From contig JBLWGC010000173.1 in NCBI GenBank assembly GCA_048772705.1, positions 62,001 through 126,000 of the forward strand: 64,000 bases of DNA, given 5' to 3'. This DNA is from Leidyana gryllorum EB-2025a (Eukaryota > Protista > Apicomplexa). Position 1 is the first letter of the stretch. Every line of letters begins with the position of its first letter. Positions 7,061 to 20,956 of this stretch are shown piece after piece. The translations under genes were made by a program, and so were the position numbers. The notes beneath the pieces were generated by a model. It was given only the letters and a program-made list of their open reading frames with translations. It was not told the DNA's origin and did not search any database.

Positions 7061-7070
7061 CACACGTGTG
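7061..7070. promoter_or_regulatory. CACACGTGTG palindrome, candidate cis-element
   Basis: Perfect 10-bp palindrome 24 nt upstream of the secreted-protein ATG at 7037. It recurs at 10961 and 34953. Confidence 0.5.
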
Positions 7071-7174: not shown

Positions 7175-9515
7175 ATGTCTGGGGGGGATGCAACACCTGC
7201 CGGCCTCCATGTAATCTTTGGTAGCCGCACACGGCGTGGCTTGAACCACGCGAATGAGGACAGGCATGCTGTGGCCGTATGGAAAGACTGGCACACGGAC
7301 GCCCACATACGACAGTCAGAGGACCCCGAAGCCGAGTTACCAGAAGAAGAAATCCCGCAGCCGCAAGTCATAGCTCCATTGTGCGTTGGAAGTGCCAGAA
7401 AAGATACCACGGTGTCTGGCTCGGGAGCTACTGGGACAGTTCAGGACCCCTTCAATCCCAAAACATGGGAAGGCTCCGGAACGCCGCGGGGTGACCAACA
7501 TAGAAGTGACGAGCAACCGGCTTATCTGTGGACAGTTTGCGATGGACATGATGGTCCAGAAGCCGCAAACTATGTATGCAAGAAGGTCGGCGACTCCTTT
7601 TCTCGGATATGGCACTCCCCCACCTCGGGCAACTTGCCTCCCAACCTACTTCAAGGTCGTAAGGTAGGGCCCGGCGAGGAGGGGGAAATATATGCACGCG
7701 GCTATGCGTTGTCGAACGCACTAGCCCGGACTTTCGAGTCTCTGGATGCGTCTTTTAGAAGCGTGGTTACGGATTCTCGGAATCAGTTGGAAGGCTGTAC
7801 AGCCGGGTCGGTGAGTGCCCAGCTTCTCCAATGTAAGATTTATGTCTTGCCAGTGTGTCACTTCAATCTTTCTAACCGGGAACTTGATGTGCTGCGCGGG
7901 TCTAGGAGGTGAGTGATTCTCTAGAAGCTTGCTTCACCGGTTCGCAGATTGTAAAGCTGCAATTCTCACTTTGGAGGAGGCAGACCCTCCGCTCCCAGGA
8001 AAGGTTGGCGAAGGGGATGATAGCCGCTCCAGTTCGAAGGCGACTCAACAATTCCAAGTGACTTGGTTCTCCAAAGAACACAGGTCATCTTCACCAAAGG
8101 AAAAGGCTAGAATACGATCTCGCGGAGGTGAGGAACTCGCTTCGGTTCGCCAAATACTCAATCGTTAGGTTGGTTCCGTCATGGGCGTGTGGGCGGAGTT
8201 CTCGAACCAACGCGAAGTAAGCACGGATGATTGTGCCGCTGACTGATTTCCGATTTCCAATCCGTAGCTATCGGCGATTTTGACGTGAAGTCATCTCAAC
8301 CACCTGGGGTGGTCATAGCCACACCTGAAGTGCGTACGTTTTCAGTCACCAAGCCCGCTCTCGTGCTGGTGGCATCAGATGGTGAGACAGACAATGCACT
8401 GCTTGGGCATGGTGCCGTTTAATCACAGGTGTCTGGGATGTGATGGATGCTTCTCAATTGCTGCGTACCCTCAAGAAACGCCGACGTTTATGGTATGTTG
8501 CTGTACACTCACACTGTTCGACAACGAGTTTCAGGCGTGGTATACTCTCTTGGCTGGGAGCACCCATCCCTGAGCGCCGTTCTTTTGTTAACTTCGGCTT
8601 CAGACGCCGTGCTAAGTCCAAAGAAGGTCTCGAATCAATGCTGCAAATGCCCACAGGGGGTGACTTGTGCGCCATGGCAGATACTCTTGTAACACGAGTG
8701 AGTTGCGAATTGCAAATGTGGGAGTATTGAGTTCTTTACTTGTGCAGGCTCACGACTTGGGCTCGGATGACGATTGCACTTGTGTCTGCATATATCTTCG
8801 CCCAGCTGCGGTCACCCGACCTGTCGACTCTTCCCTAAAGCGAGGAGTCGATGCGACGCCTGAAGACATGGACTTAACCAATACTGGAGAAGCCGATCAA
8901 GATTACAATGTTGGGCCCTCTAATGTCCCCGACGATGAAGATGACGACGATGAAGATGATGTTGAGGAGGACCTTGACGAAGACGATGAGGAAAACGACA
9001 AGGAACCCCCCTATAGTCCCAGCGCGGACAGCTACAGCGAGTATGAAAAATGGCGCAACCCGTCATTGGCGGACGACGAGGAAGTCGGAGGGGAGAACGA
9101 GGAGGATGTCGAGGCGCAACAAGCTGGTCTTCGTGATGATGACGGGGCGGTTGGTTGGGACCTCTCCACAGCCACTTTCCCTGTCTCTCTGGTGGCCACG
9201 AGTCAAGGAATGGAAACTTTGTTCCCATCATCAACAGTGGATGTTCAGGATGCACCAGAGGTTATCGAGAAGGCCCGAAAGCGTCGTGAAGAGCGTCGAG
9301 CAGCACGAGAACGCAGGAAGAAGAGCCTCGAGGACAGAGCATTGCTTGCTAGACAACAAGCGGCCGCTGAGACTCTAAGCGCTGACCACCCTCACCAACA
9401 CTACGCCTCCCCACCTCCATTGCCTACTCCGCCGCCTCCACCCGCTGAGCAGGGCGGTGACTATCAATATAGCGGTACAGACGAGAATCCGCCGAAGCAC
9501 ACCGATCACGCATGA
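7175..9515 (+). CDS. Protein phosphatase 2C (PPM family) with acidic C-terminal tail
   Basis: Motifs found across canonical introns: NEDR, VCDGHDG, GLGDC, GRVGGVLEPTRTIGDFDVK, LVASDGVWD and GSDDDCT. Confidence 0.92.
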
Positions 9516-9528
9516 CAAGAAGTACGCA

Positions 9529-10948
9529 TCATGAAGGAGGCTGCATACTCAGTACGGGATTTCCTGAGATCCGGATAGTATTGAGAAGAACAAGAAGAAC
9601 GACTCACCGTCAGCACCCCGTGTTACCCATACATCAACAGATGAATTGTTTCTTTTCTTGGCCGATGCGCGCGATTGCTCATTTCCCGAGAGGTCTTTCT
9701 GCTTCTTTGTCGCCATCGAGGCAGCGCCATCTTCACTTCCTATCTCATCAGTTGTTGTTTCATCCAAATTTGATTGCTCTTTTGCTGCATCATCATTGCC
9801 CGTCTCTGCTTCTGATTCTGCTGCCGTGGTCTCCTCGTCTTCAGTGACCTCGCTGGCTTCTCCGCCCCCATCAGTGTCTATGCTGGTCTCCGCGTCTTGC
9901 AGAATAACAGATTGTGCCGTCGGCAGACGACTGTATAATTTATGATGGAGGCAGAACCTGAGCAACTCTGAATTCCCGAACACTTAGGGCTGTCTCACCA
10001 GGACTCTATCAATGCTACCATCCAGCTGTCTCTATCCTCTGTAGTCAGTGCACACAAGGGCTGTTCAGCGCCAAGGAAGGTGAATTGAAAGCCTAAGTTG
10101 TAGACTCTGAAGTGGGCGGGTCTGGCGCGCCAAAAGCTTACATGTCGGGGCGTACTGAACCGGGTACAGAGGAAGTTCTATAGCTGCCACTGGCCATGTG
10201 TTCACAGGTTCCTGAACTCTCGATTCTGATACTGATCCTGATCCTTGAGCTCACTTTGTCTGAAACGATTTGCAGCGTTCCGTTGATCAGTTGTCCTTCG
10301 ATTTCTGGATTGTCGAAGTTAGCAGATAGGACATCATCCACAAGCGGAACATAGTAGAGAGGTCCAATCTACATACAGTGGTTTGTGCAGCCCTGCAGCC
10401 AACGACTCACCTTCTTGTACTCCTCACATCGACCCTCACCAGGCACTCCTAGCAAGCGCAACTGGATCAATCGATCTATCGTTGTCAATGTGCCTTCAGT
10501 CGTGGAGTCTAAAGCACTCACTGTTGAGGGTTCGAACTTCGTGATCATAGACCAATCCCCGCATTCTGTTGGCACAAGCTGCCTTCTTGGAAACTTCCCA
10601 TGGTTGATCAATTCCTTCAACAACTTCACAATCTTTCATTTGTTGCAGCATCTCGATGGGAATTTGCTGTTCAGCCCCGACTGAGAGGAAGTAGAATGGA
10701 CCTTTCGTTATCAACACACCTGAACTAAGGAGAAGTTTCCGAGCGTTCCGTCTGCTGCGTCGTAATTGCGATCCTATGTCTTCTTCTAGGATATGTAAGG
10801 CCGAGTTTCCTGATTCAGCTTCGTCCACGGGGTCTGCTCCCTCTTGTGCGGCTGTCAATTCCTCGTAAGGCGACATGCGGTGTTTCTCATTTTCACTTTG
10901 AAGCATCAGACACCAAGTGATCTCCAAAAAGAAGACACTCCACAACAT
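9529..10948 (-). CDS. Secreted Cys-containing PH-domain protein (crystalloid PH-like), paralogue 1
   Basis: Signal-like N-terminus MLWSVFFLEITWC. The spliced core reads CEEYKKIGPL..IELPLYPVQYAPTCFQFTFLGAEQPLCALTTEDRDSWMVALIESWFCLHHK and is followed by an acidic tail. The 3' end is ambiguous (9529 or 9506). Confidence 0.65.
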
Positions 10949-10960
10949 TGGGCTCAATCG

Positions 10961-10970
10961 CACACGTGTG
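10961..10970. promoter_or_regulatory. CACACGTGTG palindrome centred in the ~33-nt bidirectional gap between the two PH genes
   Basis: Lies 12 nt from ATG 10948 (-) and 11 nt from ATG 10982 (+). Confidence 0.55.
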
Positions 10971-10981
10971 TGCTGGCATGA

Positions 10982-12175
10982 ATGTGGTGGACCGGCAGGT
11001 ACTGCCTGGCAGGAATAGCCATACAACGGTATGTCTCTGGCCTGCAGCATGAAAGAGCCACAGTATTGGACACAGTGGGTATGTGTGCGCTGGAGAATGA
11101 CATTGTTATTATCGGTTGATAGGTCTCGAGGGAAACTGGTTCGAGGCTCCCTATCGAGAAGATGTGGCAGTTGATCACGGTCCGCTGGGAGGATTAGGGC
11201 ACCGGCTCAACAAAGGATTACCCGCACTTGCTCCTCAGTGTGAGGTTGGTCACGAAGGGCAGCTGCTGTGGCTTAAAAACCCCGACGACCTCATGGACCG
11301 ACCGCTCGTCAATCTCACTTTGGATGCTTTTCACGTCACCATGCTCGCGGAAGGTACATAGTTCACCGGTTGATGTATTACTTCGTCTACAGATTCTCAT
11401 CGAGAGGAGCACAAGTTGTGGCAGCTTCTGATGTAAGTGTTCTACCTTGTGGGCCCATGCGACCGCTTGTACAGGCCTATCCACACTCCACAGAGCCTGC
11501 AAAGATGTAAGACAAGATACAGTGACCTTATACCCGAGCTTCAGGCTTTGAGCTGCGTTTTGCCGAGCCACGGAAGCTGCTATTATGCGGCGCCACTCTA
11601 CAAGATAGAGCGTGAGATGAGTACTTCTAGATTTCAGTTGTTTGCACACCAGGGACTGGATTATGGCATTAAACAAAGCTGTGAGCACATTTCCGAGCAC
11701 ATTAGGTATATTAGAATATTCAGATATACTGCTTGAACAGCGGCCGGCACGAAACCGTATTAAATCTTGCAGAAGGTTCGGAGGTTTCCCTTCCTAAATA
11801 CTCTACGAAGGAGAACAGGTCAGTCTATAACGAAACTAGTTGGGCAACGATAGCTTGCAGATGGAGTGACTCCGTTGCCGAGCAAGAGGAGGAAGCTCGA
11901 CAGAAGGCAGAAGAAGAAGCCGAGGAGATGGCTAAGCTTGAAATAAATCAAGCGGATGAGGAGGAAGAGAAAGAAGGTGGTGTGGCTAACGCCCAGCATA
12001 AAGACCACAGCGAAGATCTTGTTGCCGAGGCGGGCAGCGACCATCACGAAATCAAGATTGAAGGGCTTGAGAAGGGTGAGTCTCAGAAGATTGGTGTCAG
12101 TAGAATTCCTCCGCAGAATCACCGCTCATCATTATTGATGGCGAGAAGGTCATACATGACCATACGATTATTTGA
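10982..12175 (+). CDS. Secreted Cys-containing PH-domain protein (crystalloid PH-like), paralogue 2
   Basis: MWWTGRYCLAGIAIQRYVSG|LQ is a weak signal peptide; an alternative start at ATG 10978 needs an intron. The spliced core reads CEVGHEGQL..LLMPIHTPQSLQRCFELRFAEPRKLLLCGATLQDRADWIMALNKAIYCLNSG and is followed by a Glu-rich tail. Ends at TGA 12175. Confidence 0.65.
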
Positions 12176-19810: not shown

Positions 19811-20956
19811 TCACTTCTTCTTCTTCCCTTTCTTTCCCCCTTTGTTCGCGGAATCTCTCTCTATCGAGCAGTGCTCTTCTATAATTTCTCGAGTTATTGA
19901 GTTGATGTGACGGAATCTATCCGGACCTGCGGAAGGGTAAAAGAGAGGGGAAGTGTCGAAAAGAGACTCTTTGGCTTTGGATTAATTACCTAATTTGATT
20001 CCACCGTACCACCGAGTCACCACAACGCACACATCCACCACCCCCAGAGTGTCAATCAGCCATTGCATATTAGAACCTGCGCCCGTCTCGCCATCTGAAT
20101 CGTGGTCCTGATGGATTAGATAAGTGTTCTCATCAGTGGGATCCATCTGAACATTGATTTTGGGCATCTGACGAGTAAAGTACGGCACGATGAGGGGGAA
20201 GGGGAAGAAGCCTCACAATACCTTCAGTCGGTACGCAACCATATTGTGCGCCGCCCGAGCGATTTTGTTATATGACAGGAGAGTACTGACAACACTTCTG
20301 ACATCCGCTAGCGACCGAACCACCGCAAAGTGCCCCTGAAACACACTCTTGCGATCAACCAGACATCGTCCATGGTGTATTTGAATCCGTCCGTCATGAG
20401 TCATCGTAGAGCTGTGCTCGCGAATGTGGTCGTCCGACGGGCCGGTTGCCGCGAGGGAGGCGTCGTTGGGTGATGTGGGCGACTTGGGAGAGTTTGCTGC
20501 ATTTTGTGCGGAGGCAAAGTCATCGGTGACTTTATCCTTTGCGGAAAGCCGCGTGACCAGTTGGCTGATCTCCTGCTGGAGCTTTTCCACACTGATGTTT
20601 TCGAGAATGTAGAGTATGCAATCGGACATGGCTTCTGTTCCAGCGCTCCAAGATGTCTCGACCGCCAGCCGACCGAGGAGCTCCTGCTCTGTGGATGCCA
20701 GCCACCAGGCCAGCACCTCTATGTGAGGCGGGTCAGTGTCTGGGTAGCCTTTAGGAATGAAAAATGAGACTTGGAATGTCCGCTTCAATGTGCCATCGCG
20801 CTCCAACAGCTCCAATTCTTTGCCCGTTAAGGACAGGTTGAGTGGTTCCAAGCCACTCACATGCACAACTCCGGAGCTCAGGTCGAGTTTGAGAGCTTCT
20901 TCCCCATAAATGGCCCCTATGACTTCCAGTTCATCTCGAAGTCTCTGATTAACCAT
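19811..20956 (-). CDS. IMPACT: IMPACT/YIH1 family protein (RWD + UPF0029 domains)
   Basis: RWD motifs ELEVIGAIYG and IPKGYPDTDPP. UPF0029 motifs DRKSVFQGH, AAHNMVAYR, DGETGAG and VVVTRWYGGIKLGPDRFRHI. Two introns. Confidence 0.95.

Follow-up and report, generated by a model that had tools for sequence, protein, structure and literature searches.

Structure of the gene pair

The window analysed in this study, a 64,000-nt stretch of genomic DNA, contains two divergent genes, designated here A (minus strand) and B (plus strand), which face each other across a gap of 33 nt (10949-10981). The features of the locus are as follows:

9529..10948, minus strand: gene A, 375 aa, probable CryPH2-type PHL protein (frame-consistent model with GT..AG introns)
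10948-10522, 10448-10411, 10368-10255, 10211-10142, 10092-9999, 9957-9608 and 9563-9529, minus strand: coding exons of gene A
10523..10948, minus strand: exon 1 of gene A (142 aa), weakly hydrophobic at its N-terminus and containing an acidic stretch and an N-terminal extension of approximately 80 aa; no relatives in the protein search described below and no Pfam match
9951..10428, minus strand: predicted PHL core of A, Cys150 to Cys250, exons 2-6 (signature, core alignment and a weak PH_6 match)
10093..10141, minus strand: predicted intron 4 of gene A, phase 1, within the codon of Cys217 (split into T and GC)
10949..10981, between the two strands: gap separating the start codons, presumably a bidirectional promoter of compact size together with the 5′ leaders
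10961..10970, within the gap: CACACGTGTG, a perfect palindrome of 10 nt in the middle of the gap; the element has copies throughout the genome
10982..12175, plus strand: gene B, 301 aa, taken as a CryPH orthologue (frame-consistent model; the C-terminal CryPH motif is obtained upon removal of the last intron)
10982-11078, 11123-11353, 11393-11432, 11475-11506, 11545-11611, 11653-11680, 11724-12075 and 12117-12175, plus strand: coding exons of gene B
11239..11732, plus strand: predicted PHL core of B, Cys72 to Cys168, exons 2-7 (signature and core alignment)
11507..11544, plus strand: predicted intron 4 of gene B, phase 1, within the homologous codon of Cys134 (split into T and GC)

Gene A comprises seven coding exons and six predicted introns (stop codon at 9529), and gene B eight coding exons and seven predicted introns (stop codon at 12175). 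Inspection of the sequence confirmed the divergent start codons given in the initial annotation, at 10948 (minus strand) and 10982 (plus strand), and its outer limits, 9529 and 12175, proved to be the stop codons that are reached once each gene has lost its last intron. All 13 predicted introns are of the GT..AG type with GTRAGY-like donors; 12 of them are 38-49 nt long and one has a length of 73 nt. The reading frame is kept at each of the 13 junctions, and retention of most of the introns would break it. The least certain intron of gene A is the last one (9607-9564). The joined models were used for the frame checks, the regular-expression test and the pairwise alignment of A with B, and the database searches were performed with single exons.

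The ATG of gene B (10982) is directly preceded by a stop codon. The frame of gene A is open further upstream (10496-11050, minus strand) to an in-frame ATG at position 11050, which lies within exon 1 of gene B; if translation started there, the hydrophobic segment described below would become internal. A similar annotation problem, concerning the internal Met44, has been reported for the CryPH homologue of Toxoplasma (PMC6291999). Since the start codons are 33 nt apart, the 5′ ends of A and B are presumably very short or overlapping. Other very short head-to-head gaps are present in the window, e.g. that between the ATGs at 20956 and 20968. At the opposite end of gene A, the stop codon of a plus-strand ORF encoding an acidic protein (8667-9515) is convergent with the stop codon of A (9531-9529) and separated from it by 13 nt, so the 3′ ends of these two genes should overlap or be minimal.

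Signature and motifs of the PHL family

Plasmodium encodes a family of four crystalloid "PH-like" (PHL) proteins, which have an ER signal peptide and, at the C-terminal helix of their PH-like domain, the signature C-x9-W-x9-C (Tremp et al. 2020, PMC7487766). The relationship to this Plasmodium family, proposed in the initial annotation, is supported by the presence of the signature in both genes and by the motif-by-motif agreement of B with the published CryPH alignment. The signature spans residues 230-250 of A (10054 to 9951, across intron 5) and residues 148-168 of B (11586 to 11732, across introns 5 and 6). It occupies the homologous place in both genes and is present only after splicing; as background, the six-frame translation of the window (128,000 residues) contains one chance match.

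Conservation of four Cys residues is seen across the orthologues of CryPH, as well as between CryPH and the product of its neighbour, CryPH-p (Jenwithisuk et al. 2018, PMC6291999), also named CryPH2. The positions of the four Cys aligned between A and B agree with the published CryPH alignment (PMC6291999, supplement), which includes sequences of Toxoplasma, Theileria, Babesia, Plasmodium and Cryptosporidium. As judged by eye from the PDF-derived alignment, B fits (i) C-[SE]-V-x3-G-x-L at the first Cys, (ii) R-C-F, (iii) R-x-x-W, (iv) A-I-[FY]-C-x-N-S, (v) L-P-K-x-S-T-K and (vi), with its C-terminus SPLIIIDGEKV, the CryPH motif S-P-x-I-x-[IV]-[DN]-G-E, which appears only upon removal of the last intron. 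The CryPH-specific motifs that follow the domain (L-P-K-x-S-T-K and the C-terminal P-x-I-x-V-[DN]-G-[DE]) are absent from A. With regard to size, B (301 aa) corresponds to PyCryPH (287 aa) and A (375 aa) to PyCryPH2 (386 aa), according to the lengths given in the P. yoelii CryPH papers.

In the exon-by-exon HMMER/Pfam analysis, whose power is limited by the fragmentation of the query, the best match was to PH_6, in the right part of the profile, its C-terminal end (exon 5 of A, E 0.21), and the highest score within the PH clan was 12.4 bits, the cut-off being 30. Nothing usable was obtained from PDB sequence searches with two single exons or from an ESM Atlas search with exon 2 of B alone, and a JGI metagenome scan with the latter exon as the query gave no relatives. 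Exon-level searches for further PHL genes in this genome, an insensitive method, matched only the query exons themselves.

Paralogy of A and B

The cores of A and B, each of about 100 aa from the first to the last conserved Cys, share 25.6% identity over 90 aligned positions. Their local alignment score is 75, compared with 25.2±4.4 for shuffled sequences (z of approximately 11), and none of 2000 shuffles reached 75. Cys residues 150, 217, 230 and 250 of A are aligned with residues 72, 134, 148 and 168 of B, respectively, which bears out the common Cys pattern noted initially. The intron reported to split the same Cys codon in both genes was also found (A, 10141-10093; B, 11507-11544): it is a phase-1 intron that divides the codon of the second aligned Cys, that of the "CF" dipeptide, into T and GC. 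The positions of two further introns are close in the alignment of A and B, and not identical.

Both proteins indeed have acidic tails, with 26 D/E versus 11 K/R in 125 aa of A and 34 versus 13 in 133 aa of B, and pairwise alignment of these tails revealed no alignable similarity. At the level of single exons, BLASTP comparison of A with B gave a weak match for the exon-5 pair (E 0.003), whereas the N-terminal exons gave none. The proposal that the genes arose by an ancient duplication is supported by the homology of the cores, which is far beyond chance. The core identity of 25.6% indicates an old split, comparable with that of PyCryPH and PyCryPH2 (CryPH-p), which are 20% identical (PMC6291999).

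The N-termini of both proteins are only moderately hydrophobic (9-residue Kyte-Doolittle maxima of 1.86 for A and 1.52 for B), and a V-S-G site is located at residue 20 of B. On this basis, "signal-like" is a fair, if provisional, description of their sequences. Exon 1 is the least conserved part of gene A: a HMMER search with it yielded no matches in 1.84 billion representative proteins, nor did it match any Pfam family. The N-terminal extension of A (approximately residues 60-142) contains two extra Cys. We considered whether it might be a half-duplicated PH core, given a "CEV..EG…W" look-alike, and rejected this idea, as the similarity to either core was not significant.

Conserved linkage and identity of the locus

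Two of the four Plasmodium PHL genes are neighbours on chromosome 7 (PMC7487766), and adjacency of the CryPH and CryPH2 genes has been reported for Plasmodium, Babesia, Theileria and Cryptosporidium (PMC6291999). The statement in the initial annotation that two Plasmodium PH genes are chromosomal neighbours agrees with the literature (PMC7487766, PMC6291999, PMC13223096), and its suggestion of very deep microsynteny gains support from the adjacency in these four other genera. The published accounts of the orientation of the pair in P. yoelii contradict each other: it was described as "tail-to-tail" in 2018 (PMC6291999) and repeatedly as head-to-head by the same laboratory in 2026 (PMC13223096). 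In the latter study a double knockout was constructed using both 3′ flanks, a design which depends on the head-to-head orientation (PMC13223096). The arrangement of A and B, on opposite strands with their start codons 33 nt apart, matches the 2026 description.

Family membership, paralogy and conserved linkage are supported by these results. On the evidence of its sequence, we regard gene B as the orthologue of CryPH. The anciently diverged paralogue, gene A, is most likely CryPH2 (CryPH-p), as indicated by its position, its size and its acidic tail. We conclude with good confidence that the locus is a gregarine CryPH/CryPH2 pair, encoding crystalloid PHL proteins and arranged head-to-head as reported for Plasmodium yoelii.

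It is conceivable, though quite unlikely, that A and B belong to the PHL family without being one-to-one orthologues of CryPH and CryPH2. In this case A would represent an inverted copy of B specific to this lineage, or the orthologue of another PHL member (of the PBANKA_0417200 or PBANKA_0902900 type), and the head-to-head arrangement would be convergent. Such an origin would account for the absence from A of the CryPH-specific motifs that B carries past the last Cys and at its C-terminus, and is compatible with the failure to find relatives of the N-terminal extension of A. It is opposed by the 25.6% identity of the cores, which places the split at a depth comparable with that of PyCryPH and PyCryPH2, by the resemblance of A to PyCryPH2 in size and in its acidic tail, and by the same neighbour relation in four other genera (PMC6291999).

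Two other explanations concern the proteins themselves. If their N-termini were not signal peptides, or if the true starts were located elsewhere (e.g. at Met25 of A), A and B would be cytosolic PH-like proteins and would not form a luminal, disulfide-bonded pair. The weak hydropathy, the presence of a Glu within the hydrophobic stretch of A and the location of the palindrome just 11-12 nt from each ATG are in line with this view. We nevertheless consider it very improbable, because all described members of the family have ER signal peptides at this position (PMC7487766, PMC6291999), the four invariant Cys suit an oxidizing compartment, and B has no other in-frame Met before its core and a stop codon directly before its ATG. 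It is scarcely credible that the gene models are artefacts, either chance open frames or decayed pseudogenes. They were predicted from the sequence, and direct exon searches gave no database relatives; against this, removal of 13 consensus introns of one size class leaves each gene with one continuous frame, and the family signature and the C-terminal motif of B emerge only after splicing.

The palindrome within the gap

The initial annotation described a palindromic promoter of about 33 nt common to both genes. A perfect palindrome does lie centrally in the gap, 12 nt from the ATG at 10948 and 11 nt from that at 10982, but it is 10 nt long, 33 nt being the length of the gap. Nor is it a promoter peculiar to this pair: four copies of CACACGTGTG are present in the window (positions 7061, 10961, 22001 and 34953), compared with 0.07 expected, and 483 in the 15.5-Mb genome, compared with 78 for a control with swapped half-sites. 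The flanks of 25 copies yielded a looser 16-nt consensus, gCR-CACACGTGTG-YGc. The open frames that hold the copies are shorter than those at random positions (median of 132 versus 228 codons; p = 1.5e-7), and the copies are slightly closer to ATGs on both sides (medians of 31 versus 42 nt; p = 0.04). In a crude test of ATG-started open frames near the motif, its sites were not separable from random ones, and a literature search for the motif returned primers alone. The number of genomic copies, their bias towards short frames and their proximity to ATGs point to a general element rather than a private switch of the pair. It is probably a promoter-proximal element and a candidate general promoter or transcription-factor site.

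We also considered CACACGTGTG as a marker of crystalloid genes. This was rejected, since the motif accompanies one of approximately ten LCCL/CPW-WPC loci, a frequency close to the average for the genome. The single case is a minus-strand CPW-WPC gene (L006:2300-2309; C104, at approximately 966241), in which the palindrome is located 10 nt upstream of the ATG, a spacing like that at the CryPH pair, and this ATG opens a hydrophobic, signal-like N-terminus.

A more far-reaching scenario can be put forward tentatively, although we think it rather unlikely. The head-to-head unit may have been kept since before the divergence of gregarines, Cryptosporidium and haematozoans through the dependence of both genes on one bidirectional control element, reduced here to a palindrome 11-12 nt from each ATG. 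The approximately 480 copies (gCR-CACACGTGTG-YGc) would then constitute the regulon of a single dimeric factor.

Crystalloid-type gene set and proposed role of the pair

Searches of the same genome revealed four LCCL matches (C21:77805-79598; C182:26247-26519; C230:45058-45264), two of which are 1.3 kb apart on C21, and 18 CPW-WPC matches at approximately six loci. None of 14 control genomes gave an LCCL or CPW-WPC match. The presence of these genes supports an origin of the genome from an apicomplexan or chromerid, as well as a gene set of the crystalloid type.

By analogy with the Plasmodium and Cryptosporidium literature, A and B would both be synthesized with N-terminal ER signal peptides. 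Each would fold into a small PH-like beta-sandwich with two disulfides among the four conserved Cys, as the literature on the family suggests. The two genes may be expressed together from the compact divergent promoter that they have in common, at the sexual or zygote stage if the timing follows that described in the literature. The proteins would then be packed, together with LCCL/LAP and CPW-WPC proteins, into a vesicular organelle of the crystalloid type, the location ascribed to their relatives, and this organelle would support the formation of sporozoites. Co-regulation, disulfides and luminal location are thus properties of A and B that we infer. In P. yoelii, loss of CryPH causes no phenotype, and loss of CryPH2 disturbs the microstructure of the crystalloid and the maturation of sporozoites (PMC6291999, among other sources). 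This difference argues against strict mutual dependence of the two proteins, and by this analogy the initial idea of a heterodimer of A and B would fit poorly.

The linkage of CryPH and CryPH2 is already known; what is new is its occurrence in a gregarine-like genome and its compaction to 33 nt. The pair extends the known microsynteny of a known family; neither the type of protein nor the mechanism is new. The CryPH papers cited here (PMC7487766, PMC6291999, PMC13223096) do not list gregarines among the lineages, and the locus places the pair in a gregarine-like lineage, in the head-to-head arrangement of Plasmodium. It lends support to an origin of the crystalloid toolkit (LAP/CCp, CPW-WPC and PHL proteins) before the main apicomplexan lineages split. 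The phase-1 intron shared by both genes in the conserved Cys codon can be looked for in other alveolates as a means of dating the duplication, and the 33-nt gap is a very small candidate promoter for studying the control of the CryPH/CryPH2 pair.

Comparison with known systems

The cores of A and B resemble the canonical cytosolic PH domain (PF00169 clan) in the prediction of beta-strands and, C-terminal to them, of a helix that carries the conserved Trp. They differ from it by the putative secretory leader, the four Cys and scores below the Pfam thresholds. In addition, A lacks basic residues after the Lys pair following Cys1, where phosphoinositide-binding PH domains carry K..K/R-x-R. The other two Plasmodium PHL proteins, PBANKA_0417200 and PBANKA_0902900, have the same signature and a signal peptide and are members of the LAP3 interactome; their genes are not linked to CryPH.

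CryPH2 (CryPH-p; PY17X_0705100/PBANKA_0704800) is the probable counterpart of A. In both cases the protein is a paralogue encoded next to CryPH (here B) in head-to-head orientation, has an identity to it of approximately 20-25% and contains the four Cys. Like CryPH2, A is longer than CryPH and has an acidic C-terminal region, whereas the N-terminal extension of A, for which no relatives were detected, sets it apart. B differs from CryPH, the crystalloid-specific PH domain protein (PY17X_0705200/PBANKA_0704900/PF3D7_0825700), by its seven short introns, by a start codon 33 nt from that of its neighbour and by one extra residue between Cys2 and Cys3. B shares with CryPH (i) a putative hydrophobic leader at the N-terminus, (ii) a variable acidic spacer, (iii) a predicted PH-like core with four Cys and C-x9-W-x9-C, (iv) L-P-K-x-S-T-K, (v) an acidic tail, (vi) the C-terminal motif and (vii) a similar overall size.
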